Below are positions 6,317 through 57,118 of a DNA stretch of 64,000 nucleotides, piece by piece. The notes under the pieces were generated by a model. That model searched no databases. It worked only from the letters and a program-made list of their open reading frames with translations, and had not been told where the DNA came from. This DNA is from Octopus bimaculoides (lineage: Eukaryota), in contig NC_068982.1 in NCBI RefSeq assembly GCF_001194135.2, forward strand, positions 50,366,742 through 50,430,741, given 5' to 3'. Every line of letters starts with the position of its first letter. Position 1 is the stretch's first letter. The position numbers were made by a program, and so were the translations under genes.

Positions 6317-7193
6317 TGAGGTCTGATCAATAGGTATCCGGACTGTTCCCATAGTAACGAAGCTAAAGCATAGAGAGAGTGAAGACAATTAACACAAATT
6401 GACCTTGAACTCTGTGCACTAAGTTTTAACAGAGTAGTTCACTTCTGCAGTTTACAGCAGTGCTTGGAAGAAAGGTGTGTTGTATGTGATTGTTGCATTG
6501 ACCATGACAGAGAAAGTTATCATGACAATACCTTCTCAGATGCCTACGCAGAATTGCAGAAAATGTATGGAGAGGAGTGTATGAGCTGCACACAAGTCTA
6601 TGAGTGGTTCAGATGTTTTGAAAATGACCGAAAAAATGTCAATATTGACAAACGTTCTGGGAGACCCACAACCAGCAGAACTGAGAAAAACATCGCAGTT
6701 GTGAGGGGACATCACTGAATCACCATCCGTGGGTGATCAGAGGACATGCAGATTAGTTAGGGTTCAGTTCATACCATTATCCTTGAAGATTTGGGTATGA
6801 GACATGTGTCTGCCAAGTTTGTGCCAAAACTGCTTTCAGCTGACCAAAAGGACACTTGGGTTTCAGTTGCACAAGATCTCTTTGATTGTGTTGAGAACGA
6901 TGAAAACTTTTTGAAAACTTTGTGTAGGCCTCTGAGCAGGTATTGCCAAGCTTTTGGCAAAATTTGATGCAGATTCTCTATTCAACTTTTTCTATCATTG
7001 TCAATGTGATGATCATGCACTGCACCACTTTCCTTCCAAGCACTGCTGTAAACAGCACAAGTGAGCTAGAATGTTAAAACTTAGTGGACCTGCACAACTG
7101 AGTTCAAGGTCAATCTGTACTAAGTGGCTTCACTCTCCATGCTTTAGCTTCATTACTATGGCAACAGTCCAGATACTTATTGATAAGACCACA
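6317..7193 (+). mobile_element. Non-autonomous mariner derivative with fold-back (two 5' ends) structure
   Basis: Starts TA|TGAGGTCTGATCAATAGGTATCCGGACTG and ends with its reverse complement. The left part encodes a frameshifted transposase N-terminus (VYEWFRCF..DKRSGRPTTS..LGMRHVSAKFVPKLL..FLKT). About 6918-7193 is an inverted copy of the TIR, 5'UTR and first ~28 codons. No DDD catalytic domain. Confidence 0.85.
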
Positions 7194-22719: not shown

Positions 22720-23070
22720 GCAAATATGGCTGTACAGTTAAGAAGCTCTCTTTGGGACCATATGGTTTCAGGTTCAGTCTCATTGCAGGGCACCTTGGGC
22801 AAGTGTCTTGTAGTATAGCTCCAATCCAGCCCTACCAAAGCCTTGTGAGTGAATTTGGCTGACAGAAACTGTATGGAGAAACGGTGTGCATGCTTGTGTG
22901 TGTGTGTGTGTTTCTGCTTATATTTATTCTCCCATACCACTTGACAACCGGTGTTGGTTTGCTTATGTTGGCAAAAAGGACCAATTAAATACAGTACCAG
23001 GCTTTAAAAAAAAACATTTTTTAAGTATTGGGGTCAATGACTGGAATAAGTATAAGGTAAAAAGATAAAC
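22720..23070 (+). mobile_element. SINE family A immediately upstream of the 23114 acceptor
   Basis: Homologous to 7850-8267. Confidence 0.75.
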
Positions 23071-23113
23071 CTTCTCTTACCTTTTCTGTTTTTTTCTCTT
23101 CCTCTCTTTGCAG

Positions 23114-23278
23114 TTTACATTAATTCTGTTCAAGCATTGAACTGCTATGTGTGCAATTCAACATTGGATGACAACTGCAATGCAAAATTTGAAAAGACTG
23201 AGATAAACCCTGTAAAGCCGCAACATTGTAATGTCTACAATGCCAAATATTGCATCAAAGTCTATGGAATGTGGGGAG
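23114..23278 (+). CDS. Ly6/uPAR (three-finger, QVR / U-scoloptoxin(05)-like) protein, internal exon: end of signal peptide plus N-half of the LU domain
   Basis: Long pyrimidine tract + TTTGCAG acceptor (AG 23112-13) and GAG|GTAAGT donor (23279). 165 nt, phase 1-1. Translates (V)YINSVQA|LNCYVCNSTLDDNCNAKFEKTEINPVKPQHCNVYNAKYCIKVYGMWG(G), with the typical LxCYxC start after a V-x-A signal-peptidase site. Confidence 0.93.
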
Positions 23279-23324
23279 GTAAGTTCTTGTTTGAAATTTG
23301 GCACATACATACATACAGATGAGG

Positions 23325-23669
23325 TGGAGGCGCAATGGCCCAGTGGTTAGGGCAACGGACTCGCAGTCATAGGATTGCGATTTCGATTCCCAGATCAGGA
23401 GTTGTGAGTGTTTATTGAGCGAAAACACCTAAAGCTCCACAAGGCTCCGGTAGGGGATGGTGGCGAACCCTGCTGTACTCTTTCACCACAACACTCTCTC
23501 ACTCTTACTTCCTGTTTCTGTTGTACCTGTAATTCAAAAGGCCAGCCTTGTCACACTGTGTCACGCTGAATATCCCTGAGAACTACGTTAAGAGTACACG
23601 TGTCTGTGGAGTGCTCAGCCACTTGCACATTAATTTCACGAGCAGGCTGTTCCGTTGATTGGATCAACT
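23325..23669 (+). mobile_element. tRNA-derived SINE (family B), cut by an assembly gap
   Basis: Closely matches 37394-37778 along its length. Confidence 0.9.
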
Positions 23670-24002
23670 NNNNNNNNNNNNNNNNNNNNNNNNNNNNNNN
23701 NNNNNNNNNNNNNNNNNNNNNNNNNNNNNNNNNNNNNNNNNNNNNNNNNNNNNNNNNNNNNNNNNNNNNNNNNNNNNNNNNNNNNNNNNNNNNNNNNNNN
23801 NNNNNNNNNNNNNNNNNNNNNNNNNNNNNNNNNNNNNNNNNNNNNNNNNNNNNNNNNNNNNNNNNNNNNNNNNNNNNNNNNNNNNNNNNNNNNNNNNNNN
23901 NNNNNNNNNNNNNNNNNNNNNNNNNNNNNNNNNNNNNNNNNNNNNNNNNNNNNNNNNNNNNNNNNNNNNNNNNNNNNNNNNNNNNNNNNNNNNNNNNNNN
24001 NN
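23670..24002. other. Assembly gap; other gaps at 30773-30785, 35400-35565, 36028-36865, 52685-53527, 55116-55457
   Basis: Runs of N. Confidence 1.
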
Positions 24003-24024
24003 CCTCCACCCAGCCTAGCCTGCA

Positions 24025-24067
24025 TTCAGGGACATGTTTCTGAGTCTTTGCTCGTCATCAGCCTGAA
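24025..24067 (-). ncRNA. Minimal type I hammerhead ribozyme, inverted copy
   Basis: UUCAGG CUGAUGA CGAG-caaaga-CUCA GAAA C-AU-GUC^ CCUGAA on the - strand. Core intact, but with a C.A mismatch at the base of helix II. Confidence 0.75.
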
Positions 24068-24541
24068 GTAGCACGACCGGCTAGTTGAAGAAACCTGTTT
24101 AACCTTCGTAAGTATATACTATTTCAGTGAAATACATTCACTGGTAACAAAAATTAGAAATAATGAATTTCTAAATCTCTCAGAGAGACTTAAGCAGTAG
24201 TGATGCGATAAAGTAGTTGTATACTGCCAACTTAACAGGCTAGGCTGGGTGGAGGAGTTTGTCTCCCCTTCGTAAGGATAAGGGCACAGGAAATGTGCCA
24301 AGGCCTAATAGGAAGTGGTCTGGCTTCCTAGGGCTAAACATCAGTAGTATATTCCCTTATTGGGACTGTCACATTAAGTTGGCAGTATACAACTACTTTA
24401 TCGCATCACTACTGCTTAAGTCTCTCTGAGTGATTTAGAAATATATTATTTCTAAATTCTGTAATCAGTGAATGTATTTCACTGAAATAGTATATACTTA
24501 CGAAGGTTAAACAGATTTCTTCAGCTAGCCAGTCATACTAC

Positions 24542-24584
24542 TTCAGGCTGATGATGAGCAAAGACTCAGAAACATGTCCCTGAA
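24542..24584 (+). ncRNA. Minimal type I hammerhead ribozyme
   Basis: UUCAGG [CUGAUGA] UGAG-caaaga-CUCA [GAAA] C-AU-GUC^ CCUGAA. Helix I 6 bp, helix II 4 bp, minimal helix III with self-complementary ACAUGU. Predicted cut after 24578. Base pair 10.1-11.1 is U-A rather than the usual R-Y. Confidence 0.85.
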
Positions 24585-24751
24585 TGCAGGCTAGGCTGGG
24601 TGGAGGAGTTTGTCTCCCCTTCATAAGGATAAGGGCACAGGAAATGTGTCAAGGCCTAATAGGAAGCGGTCTGGCTTCCTAGGGCTAAACAGCAGTAGTA
24701 TATTCCCTTATTGGGACTGTCACGTTAAGTTGGCAGTATACAACTACTCTC

Positions 24752-24833
<82 letters not shown>

Positions 24834-25273
24834 TATACACATAAATGTGTGTGTATGTCTCAGTTTCTCAAGTTATATGTATTTGTGTGTTACTATACAC
24901 ATTAGATGCTCTGTAGCAATGAATCACCAACTTCGCATGGTTAAACACCAGATCATGGATTGAAAGCTTTCCCTTCTGCATGTTTATGCGAACATAACTA
25001 CATTATATATTTCTCATTTTTTTTGTTTTCTGTTACTGCTGGTTTCAGTCATTCAAGGCTGGTAGTGCTGTGACAATGATATTGACACCCTAGTATTTTG
25101 TTTACTATTTACTTAATTGGCCTCAGAAGAGGACAAAATGCACAGTTGATCATATTCATAAAGAAAGGTGAACAAGTTGCATTGAAATGTATCAGGTATT
25201 TTCATTTGACACAACAATTTTTGCCATTGTACACATACACTCTCTCTCTCTCTTTCTCACACACACACATACG

Positions 25274-25307
<34 letters not shown>

Positions 25308-25324
25308 AACTTCACATACATTCA

Positions 25325-25535
25325 CACATGTCAGGCTTCACATACACACACACGTCAGGCTTCACATACACACACACGTCAGGCTTCACATACACACACA
25401 CGTCAGGCTTCACTTACACGCACGTCAGGCTTCACACACACGCACGTCAGGCTTCACACACGCATGCACATCAGGCTTCACGCGCACATACCAGGTTTCA
25501 TACACATACACACACGTCAGGCTTCATACACATAC
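25325..25535 (+). repeat. Minisatellite, about 9 units of 20-26 bp (CACACGTCAGGCTTCACATACACA)
   Basis: GTCAGGCTTCA-type cores at 25330, 25354, 25378, 25402, 25424, 25446, 25470, 25490 and 25516, embedded in (CA)n. Confidence 0.9.
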
Positions 25536-25989
25536 GTTGGATTTCTGCACTGTTCACTGTTTGAAGAACTGTGTCATGAGCTTCTTAGCCACAGCAGATG
25601 AAATGCATGAGGAGAAGATGCCAGTGTTGTTTTCTGGGAAATATTGATTTCAAATTTTGGCACAAGGCCAGCAATTCCAGTTCGATGTGGGTAACTCAAT
25701 TAAATGAACGCCAGTACTCAACTGGTACCTATTTTATTGACTCTGAAAGGATGAAAGGCAAAGTTCACCATGGCAGAATTTGAAATCAGAACATAACAAT
25801 GGATGAAATGCTACTAAACATTTTGCCAGGCATGCTAATGATTCTACCAGCTCACTGTCTTCTTTCTTTTTGGGAAATATTGATTGAAGAAAACTGTTAC
25901 AAATGAAATCTGATAGGTTAAACATCATCAACATTTTCATATCCAATTCTTCCCTGCTTGCATATTTTTCAGCTTTGTGTCTCAAAACT

Positions 25990-30424: not shown

Positions 30425-31365
<941 letters not shown>

Positions 31366-32879: not shown

Positions 32880-35800
32880 TTAATGTTGCTCTACGACAAT
32901 TTTAGGCTCAGTTGTAGAATGAAATGCACACAATTTACTGTTTTTATTTTTCTGTAGTCTAATTGTTAAGTTTTCAACACGTTTTCAAGAATTGACCAAT
33001 CCTCCTCCTCCTCATCATCATCATCATCTTCTTCTTCTCAACAAATTCCATCCAATCCGTGGGTGTGTGTGTGTGTGCATGGGTAAAGTAGATATTAAAA
33101 TAAGGATTTCTAACAATGACCAACCCATACTTTTACTCAGGTATCATGTACCTGAGACTTCATTATTCATTTTGCCCTCTACTTTTCAAGATGGTTCTGT
33201 GTAATTTGAGGGTGATTTGACTACTATTTCTCAGAGCTTCAGCCACATTGAAACTTCCACATTAGCTTGTGTTATTGTTTCTATAGTTCGTTCATTTTAT
33301 ATGGACCATAACTCGCCTTTATTATAAGTATACCATTAAGATAGGTGATAGATTGAGAAATATAAATCAAATGCTGCTTTTCTGTTTGGAAATAGAACTT
33401 AGCAAATGGAACTTCTATTTTAATATCGTATTTAACCTTAGGACAAGATCATATCATAAAACTATGATAACTAATAACTAGATGACTCTTCTGATTGTAA
33501 TTTTCTGTGCCCCCTTTGTTTCTGGAACATCATTTAGTAGGAAAGCTCTCTATCAAATTGAATTATGTTCAAAGTAGATGTGAGTATAGATTGCATAGAC
33601 TTGTAATGCTAAATATCTGAAGAGGATGTTTCATTAGGGAATACAGTCCAATGAAATAAAAATAGTTGTTAGATTACAGTTTTAATGGCATACCTATCAG
33701 AAAATGTTGTCATGGAAATTACTTAGATGAAGTTGCTGTATGGAGATAGATTCAGGCTTTAGATTTTTGCCTTCTGTTTACTGGAAATATTCCGTGGTTG
33801 TATAATTACAAATGACATATCATTTGGGGTTGTCTAATTTTAGTAAATAAAAGCCCTTTTAGCAAAAGCACTCTATTCTATTAGTCTATATTTTGAGATA
33901 GACAGGTTAGGAAAGGCTGCTCAAGCCTAGATATATTCACACTGCAACCTTATCAGAGAAAGAAAAAAAGAAAAAGTTGGCAGAAGTTATTCTAACTCCT
34001 CTTTTACTGTCAGTTCCATTTCAGTTTTCACTGTACTTTTCAATAAGTAAAAACACCCTTATAACTACTTTAAGGAAAATGTGAAAAATTACTGTTTATC
34101 TCAAACATTTTCAATCCTCCTCCTCATTGTATTTTTTTTTTTTTGTGTTCATTTTTCCATGTTGGTAAGGATTGGACAAGACTCTTTGCAAGCTGTGTTT
34201 TATAGCTAGCTGCCCTTTCTGATGCTAACAATTTTAGTCACCTCTTCAAACACAAGGAGACAGTGTATTTATTCTAAAAACTAGGATTTACACACTGCAA
34301 CTGGGAAGTGTTTACAGTACCGAGCCCTCTCAAACAGTCCCTCACCTAAACATCAATGTTGTTTAACATTAGTGATCAGATAAGTTTCTCATGGTATCTT
34401 CTTTTATCATTTATTTATTTCAATCACTGAACTGCATCCTTGCTGGGATGCTGCCCTAAAGGGTTTTGGTCAAGCAAATCAACCACAGTACTAAACTTTT
34501 TAAGTCCAGCAGTTATTTTATCAGTCTCCATTGCCAAACTGTTAAGCTATGGTGATCTACACAAACCAACACCAGTTGTCAAGCAGTTGGTTCATGGGGG
34601 GAACAGGGACAACACACACACACACACACATGAAAGACTTCTGCACAGTTTCCACCTACCAGTTTCACTTTGAAAACTTCATGCTTTTTTCAAAAACAAA
34701 TTCTTCAGTTCTACTTTTACATCAGTTTGTCTGCCACATGTTACTTTAGCTCTTTTCAAACATCACATTCTACCTTAAAACCATCTCTCTTCTCTTAAAA
34801 TGTGTTTGAGTGCTTTCAGAAATTTTCCATTTCTGGTGCTTCTTTCACTGAAAAAATTTCGGTGATTAACAGATTACCAAACTATATCACTGAGCAGATG
34901 GGAGCTTCCGCATTCGCTTGACATGTTAGAAATAGCAGCTAAATATTTTATAAGTCACACACACAAGGAAAAAGGACATATAAGCTATGCAACTTCTGAG
35001 AAAAGAAAACAAAAAGTTGAGTGGGGATATTCACAGCTAGAACATCATAGATTTTAAAAATCTGATTAATTTTTACTGTATTCCAATTTCAAGTCTGTTT
35101 AGTACTATTGCAGCAGGTTGTTATCTCCCTTATCTTACCTGTTTCATTGTCAGGTAAAAGTGTGTTCAATTATTAACACAACACTATAATGTTAGTAGTG
35201 AAATAGAAACTCACAACACTTTGAGTGGAGAAGCCAATATCTTATGATTATCTATTTTTACGCTAAACGTTGTATTACAGGAATGGATGAAACAAAATTA
35301 ATTACTCTTCTAGTTAATACAATATTTAATCAATTTATTCATGCACTATATTAGTATGTGTGCATATATGTGTGCGTGTGTATATATATATATATATATN
35401 NNNNNNNNNNNNNNNNNNNNNNNNNNNNNNNNNNNNNNNNNNNNNNNNNNNNNNNNNNNNNNNNNNNNNNNNNNNNNNNNNNNNNNNNNNNNNNNNNNNN
35501 NNNNNNNNNNNNNNNNNNNNNNNNNNNNNNNNNNNNNNNNNNNNNNNNNNNNNNNNNNNNNNNNNATATATATCTTTTATCTTTTACTTGTTTCAGTCAT
35601 TAGACTGCAGCCATGCTGGAGTAACCCTTTAACCCTTTGAAGAATTTTTAGTCAGATGAATTAACACCCATGACTTCTTTTATGCTTGGTACATATTCTA
35701 TCAGTGTCTTTTGCCAAACCATTAAGTTATGGGGATGCAAACTCACCAGTTGTCAAGCAGTGGTGGGGAGACAAACAGATACACACACATACATATATAT

Positions 35801-36027: not shown

Positions 36028-36865
36028 NNNNNNNNNNNNNNNNNNNNNNNNNNNNNNNNNNNNNNNNNNNNNNNNNNNNNNNNNNNNNNNNNNNNNNNNN
36101 NNNNNNNNNNNNNNNNNNNNNNNNNNNNNNNNNNNNNNNNNNNNNNNNNNNNNNNNNNNNNNNNNNNNNNNNNNNNNNNNNNNNNNNNNNNNNNNNNNNN
36201 NNNNNNNNNNNNNNNNNNNNNNNNNNNNNNNNNNNNNNNNNNNNNNNNNNNNNNNNNNNNNNNNNNNNNNNNNNNNNNNNNNNNNNNNNNNNNNNNNNNN
36301 NNNNNNNNNNNNNNNNNNNNNNNNNNNNNNNNNNNNNNNNNNNNNNNNNNNNNNNNNNNNNNNNNNNNNNNNNNNNNNNNNNNNNNNNNNNNNNNNNNNN
36401 NNNNNNNNNNNNNNNNNNNNNNNNNNNNNNNNNNNNNNNNNNNNNNNNNNNNNNNNNNNNNNNNNNNNNNNNNNNNNNNNNNNNNNNNNNNNNNNNNNNN
36501 NNNNNNNNNNNNNNNNNNNNNNNNNNNNNNNNNNNNNNNNNNNNNNNNNNNNNNNNNNNNNNNNNNNNNNNNNNNNNNNNNNNNNNNNNNNNNNNNNNNN
36601 NNNNNNNNNNNNNNNNNNNNNNNNNNNNNNNNNNNNNNNNNNNNNNNNNNNNNNNNNNNNNNNNNNNNNNNNNNNNNNNNNNNNNNNNNNNNNNNNNNNN
36701 NNNNNNNNNNNNNNNNNNNNNNNNNNNNNNNNNNNNNNNNNNNNNNNNNNNNNNNNNNNNNNNNNNNNNNNNNNNNNNNNNNNNNNNNNNNNNNNNNNNN
36801 NNNNNNNNNNNNNNNNNNNNNNNNNNNNNNNNNNNNNNNNNNNNNNNNNNNNNNNNNNNNNNNNN

Positions 36866-37329: not shown

Positions 37330-37946
37330 CCATTTAGCATGTTAACTGGTCACATCTGACCCAAATATTCTACTTGTTTTATGTTCAAACCAGTGGAGGC
37401 GCAATGGCCCAGTGGTTAGGGCAGCGGACTCGCGGTCATAGGATTGCGGTTTCGATTCCCAGACCGGACGTTGTGAGTGTTTATTGAGTGAAAACACCTA
37501 AAGCTCCACGAGGCTCTGGCAGGGGATGGTGGCGAACCCTGCTGTACTCTTTCACCTCAACTTTCTCACTCTTACTTCCTGTTTCTGTTGTGCCTGTAAT
37601 TCAAAGGGTCAACCTTGTCACACTGTGTCACGCTGAATATCCCCGAGAACTATGTTAAGGGTACACGTGTCTGTGGAGTGCTCAGCCACTTGCACGTTAA
37701 TTTCACGAGCAGGTTGTTCCGTTGATGGGATCAACTGGAACCCTCGACGTCGTAAGCGATGGAGTGCCAACAACAACGTATGTTCAAACCAGCCAGATCC
37801 AGCTTCTCACACCTGCTCTACAGTGTCATTCTACAAACAAAGAGTAACATCATGAAAATCTTGAAGCTATGAGATAATACATGATTAATTCAAAACAATG
37901 TGAATTAATTAGCATTACATTTGGCAGTAATTTGAATGCTAAAGGT
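37330..37946. mobile_element. piggyBac-type MITE interrupted by a SINE
   Basis: CCATTTAGCAT ... AATGCTAAAGGT|TTAA with a SINE inserted at 37394-37778. Confidence 0.7.
37394..37778 (+). mobile_element. Young full-length tRNA-derived SINE (family B)
   Basis: A box (TGGCCCAGTGG) and B box (GGTTTCGATTCC), CpGs retained, (CAA)n tail, 14-bp TSD TATGTTCAAACCAG (37380-93 / 37779-92). Confidence 0.9.
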
Positions 37947-52684: not shown

Positions 52685-54024
52685 NNNNNNNNNNNNNNNN
52701 NNNNNNNNNNNNNNNNNNNNNNNNNNNNNNNNNNNNNNNNNNNNNNNNNNNNNNNNNNNNNNNNNNNNNNNNNNNNNNNNNNNNNNNNNNNNNNNNNNNN
52801 NNNNNNNNNNNNNNNNNNNNNNNNNNNNNNNNNNNNNNNNNNNNNNNNNNNNNNNNNNNNNNNNNNNNNNNNNNNNNNNNNNNNNNNNNNNNNNNNNNNN
52901 NNNNNNNNNNNNNNNNNNNNNNNNNNNNNNNNNNNNNNNNNNNNNNNNNNNNNNNNNNNNNNNNNNNNNNNNNNNNNNNNNNNNNNNNNNNNNNNNNNNN
53001 NNNNNNNNNNNNNNNNNNNNNNNNNNNNNNNNNNNNNNNNNNNNNNNNNNNNNNNNNNNNNNNNNNNNNNNNNNNNNNNNNNNNNNNNNNNNNNNNNNNN
53101 NNNNNNNNNNNNNNNNNNNNNNNNNNNNNNNNNNNNNNNNNNNNNNNNNNNNNNNNNNNNNNNNNNNNNNNNNNNNNNNNNNNNNNNNNNNNNNNNNNNN
53201 NNNNNNNNNNNNNNNNNNNNNNNNNNNNNNNNNNNNNNNNNNNNNNNNNNNNNNNNNNNNNNNNNNNNNNNNNNNNNNNNNNNNNNNNNNNNNNNNNNNN
53301 NNNNNNNNNNNNNNNNNNNNNNNNNNNNNNNNNNNNNNNNNNNNNNNNNNNNNNNNNNNNNNNNNNNNNNNNNNNNNNNNNNNNNNNNNNNNNNNNNNNN
53401 NNNNNNNNNNNNNNNNNNNNNNNNNNNNNNNNNNNNNNNNNNNNNNNNNNNNNNNNNNNNNNNNNNNNNNNNNNNNNNNNNNNNNNNNNNNNNNNNNNNN
53501 NNNNNNNNNNNNNNNNNNNNNNNNNNNAATATTTTCTACAAAGTTTTGTACCAAGCCATGGGTTTGGGTTTCAGTAGTCCTCCCCTGAAGCTTTGGTTTA
53601 TTGTGCTTCTAATTTTTTTTTATGTCATTACAAAATTAATGATTTGGTTAGGGTTTTAAACAATCATCTTACCCAATTAAAATCTGAATTTGTTTTGTCA
53701 TTACATCTCTTCAAACAATGAAAGAAATAAACATTGTAGTGCCACATCAGACAAAATTTTTAGCGGCATTTCTTCCAGCATTATATTCTGTGTTCAAATA
53801 TCATCGGGGTCAACTTTGCTTTTCATTTATTTGGGATTGATAAAATAAGTACCAGGGGTCGATATAATTGACTAACTACACTCCCCAAAAATGCTTATTT
53901 TGTGCCAAAATTTGAGACTAATATCACTATTTTGATAAATGTCTGTGGTTAGAAATATGTGATTTATAAATGCAGCACTATTGTTACTTGCAACTCTATT
54001 AATATTTTTGATAGTGATAGGGTA

Positions 54025-54358: not shown

Positions 54359-56384
54359 TAGTGATAGTATATGAATATAATGGGCTAAAGCTTAAATTTT
54401 TTTTTAATTACATAGAACCTAAGTACAAAAATTATAGGATTGTAAAATATCAAATTATGGTTAGTGTTATAATTATTGTAATTATTAGATTTTATTGTAT
54501 TTTAACCTTCATGGTATTTTAATTATTGTAATTATTATTAGGCTGATTAGTAGAATCATAAGAGCATTGGAGAAAGACTCTTGCTGCAGGATTTCTTCCT
54601 GCTGTTGATGTTCTAAGTTCAAATCCTGCTGAGGTTAACTTTTGCCTCTGTGGGTATCAGTAAAATACAATACAGTCAAGTATTAAGGTCAGCATATTTG
54701 ATTATTCCCATTCCATAAATTTCAGACCTTGTTCCTATGTTAGAAACAATTATTATAATTATTATTGTTGTTTATGTTGTGGATGGCAGAATCGGTAGAT
54801 CACCCATCAAAATCTTTCATGCAGTTTTTAGTTATTTCTAGAGTTAGAATAATGTTGAACTTGCTTAATCCCTTAATCATCCTTCTGGGGTTGATGTAAT
54901 TGGTTATACACTTCTCCCAAAATTTTTCTCTTGTACCTCTGTAAAATATATTGGTTTAAGATTATTGTAATTATCAGTACATTAGCTGAAGCGTTTCCTT
55001 TAAACTTTGAAGATTACTTTTATATTACTTTAATAATTGTAAAACTATTTGCATTTTTTAGCCATAAAGCTATCAGTACAATGATTTCTACCATATGTAT
55101 ATGCATTTATATATANNNNNNNNNNNNNNNNNNNNNNNNNNNNNNNNNNNNNNNNNNNNNNNNNNNNNNNNNNNNNNNNNNNNNNNNNNNNNNNNNNNNN
55201 NNNNNNNNNNNNNNNNNNNNNNNNNNNNNNNNNNNNNNNNNNNNNNNNNNNNNNNNNNNNNNNNNNNNNNNNNNNNNNNNNNNNNNNNNNNNNNNNNNNN
55301 NNNNNNNNNNNNNNNNNNNNNNNNNNNNNNNNNNNNNNNNNNNNNNNNNNNNNNNNNNNNNNNNNNNNNNNNNNNNNNNNNNNNNNNNNNNNNNNNNNNN
55401 NNNNNNNNNNNNNNNNNNNNNNNNNNNNNNNNNNNNNNNNNNNNNNNNNNNNNNNNNGTATGTTTTACAATATAATATTGTAAAATTGTATCTTTAAAAA
55501 AAAAATTTTATTCTATATAATATTGTATCTGAAACCAAAACAAACTGAACATCTTCAAGACATTCCAAACTGTATATAAGTAATGAAACAATTAATCCCA
55601 AAAGTTAAAAGGGATTTATATATATAAAAAGTGCTAATATGTTATTTTTGGTACTTAAATGCATAAAATAAAAATGTTTTCCTGTAAAAAAAAATAAATA
55701 AAAATTATTCTTTTAGAAATTTGGTTTTTTCTTTCACTTTTAAATTTCATTGTTTTATGTGTTTGTCTTTTTATGTTAAATTCTGATTGAAAATTCAAAA
55801 CTTAGCATTTTTTGTTTCCTTTTGACTATGTGTCTGTAAGAACTAAAAAAGAATATGTGTAGTATTCGAAAGTAGAATAAAACAGATTTAGCTTATCTTT
55901 TTATTAAAATATCATAAATTACATAATTTTTACATATGTTTCACTAATGAATAATAGTATGCTGTGCAGTAATCATAATGTAAATGATTACAGAATTGCA
56001 TTGAAACACAAGATCTTCAGAAGAAAAGTAGTAATTTAATCCATAGTTATTTAACAGCCTTGGTTGGTTGGCAGTACTAAATGAAAACTATTATATAATG
56101 CATATATGATCATCATTTTGAATCTGCTGTATGTCACTGTAGTCCAGAGATGTCTTATGTGGGGCATCTATTATCTAACAAGGCATTGAAAGGTTCTGGA
56201 TTGGATCCTTAGACAATCAGAAAAACTGCACTGCAGTATTTTTTCCAGTTCTTTACATTTTGAATTCATTCAATTGGTTGGTTGGCAGAAACTTAAAAAT
56301 GCACCTGTAACTTACTTTAAAATGTCTCAAGCAGATTCAGTAAATGGCAAAAAAAGGCTTGGGAATGTCAAGGGAACAGGTCTG

Positions 56385-57118
56385 GCTCAGCAGGTGGTCC
56401 CAGTGTATCACAGACTGGACCCGGTCGTCATCCTGCCACTGTGGTCAAACAATCTTCAAGAAAAAGTAAAAATACACATCCTTTGAATTTTGGTTGTTGG
56501 AATGTGTGCACACTTCTTGATGATAATTTCAACAATAGGCCAGAAAGAGGTACTGCACTTATTGCATGTGAGCTCAAGAAATATTTCCTTGATATAGTTG
56601 CCCTCTCTGAAACTCGTCTCTCTGGTGAGGTTCAAGTAAATGAACCTACTTATGGATATACTGTCTTTTTGGAGAGGCTTACCTAAGGGTCAGCATAGAG
56701 AATCTGGTATTGGGTTTGCTCTCAAGAATACATTAGTATCCTCCATTGCAGAGCTTCCAAGTGGTGTATCTGAACGGATCATGTCATGCTGTATTAAACT
56801 GACAAAAGGTAGGTTTCTTACTGTTGTCAGTATTTATGCACCAACAATGTCCCATTCTGGGGAAACTGTAGGACAGTTTTATGATGATCTGGCACGATTA
56901 TTGATGAAAGTATCAATTTCTAACAAGCTGGTCATATTGAGAGATTTCAATGCAAGAGTTAGAAAGGACTATGTTTCATAGCCTGTTTTAGGTCAACATG
57001 GGATTGGAAAATGCAATAAAATTGGAGTAGTTCTTTTGATGTTTTGTACTGAGAATAATCTAGTTGTTACCAACACAGTTTAAGCAGAAAAATAAATATA
57101 AATCCGCCTGGATGCACA
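56385..57118 (+). mobile_element. RTE-clade LINE 5' fragment (AP-endonuclease domain), pseudogenised
   Basis: FGCWNVCTLLD..RPERGTALIACEL....DIVALSETRL, then frameshift to GIGFA..SERIM..LTVVSIYAPT..FYDDL..LVILRDFNARV, then stop, GQHGIGKCN..G..LL.FC.ENNLVVTNT..WMH. No RT follows. Confidence 0.9.

Follow-up and report, generated by a model that had tools for sequence, protein, structure and literature searches.

An autonomous Penelope-like element has an open reading frame (ORF) with a reverse transcriptase (RT) of telomerase-like type and a GIY-YIG endonuclease, and a type I hammerhead ribozyme is recognized by the conserved core CUGANGA ... GAAA ... UH and by a type I arrangement of its helices I, II and III. 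The hammerheads of Penelope-like elements are of a minimal kind (min-HHR), in which helix I is short, helix II is 6-8 bp long, one more nucleotide follows A9 and helix III is practically absent (PMC4209133, PMC8557442, PMC11167929). Insertions of these elements share several hallmarks, namely 5' truncation, partial tandems, an adjacent inverted and 5'-truncated copy at the 5' end, and a bias towards microsatellites; they are also noted to cause trouble in short-read assemblies (PMC4209133, PMC8557442, PMC11167929). In purified form, a Penelope-like protein cuts the two strands of DNA and extends them both, with reverse transcription starting at an internal AC-rich site, and insertion of a Penelope-like element in vitro proceeded without any need for ribozyme cleavage (PMC4209133, PMC8557442, PMC11167929).

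Metazoan non-LTR retrozymes, described by Cervera and de la Pena 2020 (PMC7229834) and exemplified by mussel Mg353 and axolotl Rtz_331 and Rtz_353, are built of head-to-tail units of 150-450 bp, each with a hammerhead, and have a GC content below 45%; they occur as families of many scattered copies, whose expression yields both linear and circular RNA. The form of hammerhead found in them is the canonical metazoan type (PMC7229834), in which helix I has 6 bp and helix II has 4 bp, the loops interact, and helix III is 1-2 bp long with a small palindromic loop. In their published cycle, tandem transcripts are cut by the hammerheads, the monomers are circularized and then returned to DNA by a borrowed RT, the favored helper being Penelope-like elements. 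A 2026 preprint regards retrozymes as non-autonomous Penelope derivatives, arguing from vertebrate co-occurrence and terminal-repeat phylogeny, and reports them as sister to Penelope-like terminal repeats. No description of cephalopod retrozymes or hammerhead repeats was found in the searchable literature, where the only related item was the giant squid genome paper, which counts 235 loci of Rfam 'hammerhead 1'.

The locus considered here lies in a window of 64,000 nucleotides (the whole stretch of DNA analyzed) from an octopod genome. We regard it as probably a fossil insertion of a small, non-coding and non-autonomous retroelement of the metazoan non-LTR retrozyme type; that a dispersed, multi-copy family lies behind it is an assumption of this reading. 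Its parts and immediate neighbors are:

24236-24586, plus strand: complete repeat unit of 351 bp, non-coding and 40.5% GC (repeat coordinates, BLAST).
24587-24748, plus strand: partial second direct unit corresponding to unit positions 1-162 (BLAST, 96.9% over 162 nt).
24003-24235, minus strand: inverted, 5'-truncated arm, 94% identical to the unit and running on into the gap.
23670-24002: assembly gap of 333 N, which covers the minus arm's 3' end together with about 45 nt from the tail of an upstream SINE.
24749-24860: compound (CT)n(TA)n(CA)n microsatellite, immediately adjacent to the plus arm at its 3' end.

A sequence-only reading of the window had claimed a 351-bp direct repeat beginning at 24237 and 24588. 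The repeat is real, with starts displaced by one nucleotide (24236 and 24587); a repeat search aligned 24236-24402 with 24587-24753 at a period of 351 nt and 96% identity, and the partial second unit departs from the full one at five positions before the junction. The plus arm ends at 24748, unit position 162, in a final stretch that is AC-rich and unpaired in the predicted fold (AUACAACUACU). The inverted upstream copy reported in the same reading was also recovered: 24003-24235 pairs with 24374-24606 over 233 nt at 94% complementarity, with 13 differences. This minus arm covers positions 139-351 of one unit and then 1-20 of a further one (a 20-nt stretch at 100%), crossing the head-to-tail junction from 351 to 1 as the plus arm does, and the two arms are joined head to head, 5' to 5', at 24235/24236. 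Since both arms cross the 351-to-1 junction with no ORF between units, the template would have been a head-to-tail multimer or a circle.

As assembled, the locus holds 1.46 direct units in all and one hammerhead on each strand. With fewer than two direct copies present, TRF reported no array of 351-nt period, and no further copy of the unit was found by BLAST in the 64-kb window. An exact-pattern search of viral, metagenome and prokaryotic contigs gave no match; cephalopod DNA is probably absent from these collections, so that this result is silent on copy number. Five ORFs of the unit likewise had no match in an exact protein look-up.

Hammerhead motifs were sought with a structural descriptor, with a covariance model (R1) made from four published retrozyme ribozymes (coral Amil224, mussel Mg353, and axolotl Ax330 and Ax353, from the supplement of PMC7229834), and with Rfam. 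The resulting features were:

24542-24584, plus strand: type I hammerhead motif (structural descriptor; R1, with 13 of 13 pairs).
24025-24067, minus strand: second hammerhead copy (Rfam HH9; R1).
24528-24601, plus strand: extended hammerhead, which takes in loop 1 (UAC) as well as the stem that closes helix I (RF02275 HH9, fold).

The hammerheads previously claimed on both strands were borne out by these searches. The descriptor matched once in the window, against 0.01 matches expected per randomized window under a first-order Markov (dinucleotide-frequency-matched) null, and both it and R1 recovered the type I core and topology. With filters off and all 64 kb searched, the two best R1 matches were 24542-24584 on the plus strand (26.0 bits, E 2.2e-5) and 24067-24025 on the minus strand (21.8 bits, E 4.2e-4), the next scoring 13.1 bits. 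In the Rfam hammerhead search that had been proposed as a check, RF02275 (Hammerhead_HH9) aligned over its full length (model positions 1-77) to the plus copy, with 28.3 bits and E 8.7e-6, and again over the full model length to the minus copy, with 23.7 bits and E 2.5e-4; both scores fall well short of the gathering score of 52. These HH9 matches appear in 86-nt searches only; a permissive Rfam search of 901 nt did not pick up the hammerhead, and Rfam at gathering thresholds returned no match in the entire window. The single descriptor match against 0.01 expected, together with the selection of both sites by independent covariance models, excludes a chance origin of the hammerhead motif.

It could be argued that the motif is fortuitous, or that the inverted repeat is an assembly artefact beside a gap, given that the locus touches 333 N in a short-read-style scaffold and that nothing passes the Rfam gathering thresholds. 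We consider this explanation very improbable. Apart from the low expectation of the motif and the agreement of two independent covariance models on both sites, 13 of the 233 aligned positions differ between the arms, which thus are not one sequence folded back on itself, and the junction joins non-homologous positions (139, reversed, beside 1), which a repeat-collapse error would not yield.

The plus-strand motif reads UUCAGG / CUGAUGA / UGAG-CAAAGA-CUCA / GAAA / CAUG / UC / CCUGAA, and its predicted cut falls after C24578. It has a helix I of 6 bp, a helix II of 4 bp with U10.1-A11.1, the loops UAC and CAAAGA, and a helix III consisting of a single A15.1-U16.1 pair around a palindromic CAUG (GAAACAUGUC). 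Judged on its sequence, the octopus motif fits the canonical retrozyme hammerhead rather than the Penelope minimal variant, and the earlier description of a 'minimal', Penelope-type hammerhead was therefore mistaken. The match to published retrozymes extends to particulars, as helix III (GAAACAUGUC) is the same as that of axolotl Ax330, and U at position 10.1 is also found in axolotl Ax353. Helices I and II depart in sequence from the R1 consensus, yet all 13 pairs form in the plus copy, while one pair of helix II is broken in the minus copy.

The likeness to Rfam HH9 takes the form of a full-length alignment that includes the UAC loop 1, CUGAUGA, the CAAA-A loop 2, GAAAC, GUC and the stem that closes helix I; in the predicted fold this stem runs into the long helix of the unit. 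The octopus motif differs from HH9 in a helix III shorter by 5 nt and a helix II without G10.1-C11.1, and the two copies score 28.3 and 23.7 bits where 52 are required. HH9, which like the type I hammerheads of Schistosoma and newt satellites is among the closest known counterparts of the octopus motif, is itself a conserved, single-copy intronic motif of amniotes and not a repeat.

Where helix II begins, the conserved G10.1-C11.1 is replaced by U-A in the plus copy, a difference from metazoan retrozymes, and by C.A in the minus copy, where a T-to-C change at unit position 320 leaves the first pair of helix II mismatched; these substitutions make catalytic competence uncertain. The CUGAUGA/GAAA/GUC core had been called intact; the word is true of the core in both copies and untrue of helix II in the minus copy. 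Given its palindromic ACAUGU and one-pair helix III, the predicted ribozyme would probably act best as a dimer of neighboring copies. Thermodynamic co-folding of two ribozymes did form the 6-bp ACAUGU helix; the hammerhead was otherwise not reproduced, and we attach little weight to this result.

The unit taken from cut to cut is a monomer of 351 nt with 40.5% GC, whose predicted fold contains the following feature:

24246-24534, plus strand: long-range helix between a G-rich 5' arm (~24246-24280) and a 3' arm (~24493-24534) (repeat search, fold).

In the predicted structure this helix closes a branched RNA and prolongs the ribozyme's helix I, and the hairpins pointed out in the sequence-only reading are present in the minimum-free-energy fold. 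For the plus strand, the predicted energy is -124.5 kcal/mol when linear and -120.4 when circular (z about -7.5 against dinucleotide shuffles), with 64% of nucleotides paired; for the complementary strand, it is -98.7 kcal/mol as a circle (z -4.7). The stronger plus-strand fold is due to G-U pairs in the long-range helix, and such strand asymmetry is what selection on the RNA would be expected to give. Within the predicted monomer, the ribozyme has its helices I and II formed and not blocked, consistent with most metazoan retrozyme circles, in which the ribozyme is reported to be free to fold.

Even when the unit is repeated in a perfect tandem array, no frame exceeds 61 aa; this longest frame had no homologue in a homologue search, and no Pfam domain was found in the unit. 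Like published retrozymes, the unit is non-coding, below 45% GC and devoid of LTR features. Its 351 bp compare with 353 for the mussel and 330-353 for the axolotl units, and it shares with metazoan retrozymes the type I hammerhead (helix I of 6 bp, helix II of 4 bp, helix III short and palindromic), extensive self-pairing of the predicted RNA that leaves the ribozyme free to fold, and occurrence in a mollusc. The proposed resemblance to metazoan retrozymes is therefore upheld in size, GC content, self-pairing and ribozyme architecture. The differences are an absence of sequence similarity to the mussel and axolotl units beyond the ribozyme, and a layout of 1.46 direct units plus an inverted arm in place of a long same-strand array.

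It is this layout that resembles a Penelope-like insertion. A partial tandem, an adjacent inverted and 5'-truncated copy, a microsatellite neighbor and assembly trouble are all found at the locus, as are a type I hammerhead inside the repeat and a palindromic helix III suggesting action as a dimer. The resemblance does not extend to coding capacity or to ribozyme type. The locus has no ORF with RT and GIY-YIG, neither domain was detected within ~7 kb on either side (Pfam search of ORF pieces of at least 45 aa, 17-31.5 kb), and no long genuine ORF was found in the entire window; the ribozyme is not a min-HHR, and at this single locus no 30-40 bp 'tail' is recognizable. The earlier suggestion of a non-autonomous element mobilized by Penelope agrees with the insertion layout and, as to non-autonomy, with the lack of RT and GIY-YIG domains within ~7 kb. 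We infer the Penelope-like link of the retrozyme unit from the layout and the literature.

The same observations bear on whether the unit could instead be a piece of the pseudo-LTR of a Penelope-like element, either autonomous or with an internal deletion, rather than a member of an independent non-autonomous family. Penelope-like terminal repeats do bear type I hammerheads and do form partial-tandem insertions with inverted truncated copies, and the report of retrozymes as sister to such repeats makes for a soft boundary between the two. However, unit position 351 passes straight to position 1 in both arms with no ORF between, the RT and GIY-YIG domains are missing from the ~7 kb to either side, and the ribozyme has the canonical retrozyme shape and not the minimal Penelope form with its long helix II and bulged nucleotide. 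A pseudo-LTR origin is thus unlikely, and we retain the non-autonomous retrozyme-type element as the preferred identity of the unit.

For such a family, the published literature would suggest a life cycle that begins with transcription of tandem copies, after which every unit is cut behind GUC by the type I hammerhead. The resulting monomers of ~351 nt would fold into highly paired RNA and might be ligated into circles, and an RT/endonuclease acting in trans, most likely a Penelope-like one, would copy the multimeric or circular template into the genome. The octopus locus may have arisen when cDNA synthesis was primed by both strands of the target on such a multimeric or circular 351-nt template, giving two cDNAs of more than unit length that would have been joined head to head, 5' to 5', at 24235/24236; the 3' end of one cDNA would lie at the microsatellite and that of the other would be lost in the gap. 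The presence of all hallmarks of the Penelope-like layout is what points to dual-strand priming and head-to-head joining.

The microsatellite at 24749-24860 is the likely insertion target, and with it the locus displays the full Penelope-like insertion signature of partial tandem, inverted truncated neighbor and microsatellite target. Microsatellites occupy 2.2% of the window, and a random point would fall in or at one in about 3% of cases; the position of the plus-arm end is suggestive, though the adjacency was spotted post hoc. The left junction and any target-site duplication fall within the gap at 23670-24002.

A local rearrangement of a hammerhead satellite at the DNA level, in which template switching or unequal crossover caused duplication and inversion with no retrotransposition at this site, would be another way to produce direct and inverted copies. 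Satellite expansion by unequal crossover has been discussed in the literature for retrozyme arrays, and a locus of only about two units with an unseen left boundary lends itself to this explanation. We nevertheless find it quite unlikely, as arms placed 5' to 5', each longer than a unit or crossing a unit junction, reproduce a specific published pattern of Penelope-like integration, one arm stops exactly at a microsatellite, and the locus stands alone, with a SINE on one side and a microsatellite on the other, outside any long array.

The plus array had been said to start 9 nt beyond the position equivalent to the cut site, and 24236 is indeed the ninth nucleotide of the cleaved unit, 8 nt short of its 5' end. 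The further proposal that self-cleavage set the 5' end of the RNA gains from this proximity (about 1 in 39, noticed post hoc) and loses from the minus arm, which starts at unit position 139. The case for it is weak, given the 8-nt offset of the plus arm, the start of the minus arm at 139 and the dispensability of cleavage for insertion in vitro.

Upstream of the retrozyme lies a tRNA-derived SINE broken by the gap (23324-23669), with a second copy, 93% identical, at 37393-37780; the latter extends ~45 nt further, which places ~45 nt of the first copy inside the gap. The window contains six N gaps (23670-24002, 30773-30785, 35400-35565, 36028-36865, 52685-53527 and 55116-55457), mostly flanked by microsatellites, as is typical of short-read scaffold assemblies. 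A plus-strand frame at 23056-23319 is exon-like; it opens much as a signal peptide would, shows the cysteine pattern LNCYVCNS...C, and weakly resembles the Pfam QVR / Ly-6 / uPAR family (E 0.003, 18.9 bits against a cut-off of 27.3). The retrozyme may lie beside or inside a Ly6-like gene.

The window contains several other repeats. A minisatellite with a period of 22-24 nt (CACATACACACACACGTCAGGCTT) and ~9 copies occupies 25317-25540 within CA-rich simple sequence. A recurrent interspersed repeat, recognized by the translation '...EPGTMWL.SKLLTT' and probably representing an abundant SINE-like family, occurs mostly beside CA/TA microsatellites at ~7.9-8.3, 13.0-13.3, 14.1-14.5, 22.7-23.0, 29.5-29.7, 30.3-30.5, 38.7-39.0 and 43.7-44.0 kb. 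On the plus strand, 56321-56978 is a frameshifted fragment of a LINE AP-endonuclease, the best matches of which (two named) are Octopus bimaculoides proteins with endonuclease/exonuclease/phosphatase domains at 74-79% identity, in keeping with an octopod host, and the frame at 6383-6715 resembles, by eye, the N-terminal DNA-binding part of a mariner-type transposase.

The three copies of the unit at the locus differ from one another by 3-6%. Among the 18 differences, eight are at unpaired positions, five keep a predicted pair and five break one; there is no bias towards keeping pairs, covariation among the copies is uninformative, and they look to have decayed neutrally since insertion. With one ribozyme on each strand as assembled, a transcript of the locus would be cut once at most and would release neither monomer nor circle, and the locus is probably inert. 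Four of the 13 differences in the inverted arm are A-to-G changes clustered at 24069-24091 (unit positions 280-302), on the 3' strand of the long helix. A footprint of ADAR editing in the template RNA was considered as a source of this cluster and dropped, four A-to-G changes being too few to tell from ordinary transitions.

The kind of element that this locus probably represents, the retrozyme, is already known (PMC7229834), and a derivation of retrozymes from Penelope as non-autonomous elements has already been proposed (2026 preprint). The feature of wider use is the combination of a retrozyme unit with a Penelope-style integration footprint. Retrozymes are a natural, ribozyme-based way to circular RNA, and their mode of movement is still unsettled. 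We hold it possible, though somewhat short of probable, that the locus is the footprint of an undescribed cephalopod retrozyme family, of which other arrays yield circRNAs of ~351 nt, and that retrozyme RNA was here integrated by Penelope-like dual-strand priming at microsatellites. An octopus member would extend retrozymes to cephalopods, which would come as little surprise given the many invertebrate phyla, including bivalves, from which they have been reported. The link between Penelope and retrozymes has so far been argued only from vertebrate co-occurrence and terminal-repeat similarity; a Penelope-style footprint on a retrozyme unit supports the proposed mobilization of retrozymes by Penelope at the level of a single integration. 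If this tentative reading is true, the head-to-head, two-arm layout would be direct structural evidence for Penelope-like dual-strand integration of retrozyme RNA.
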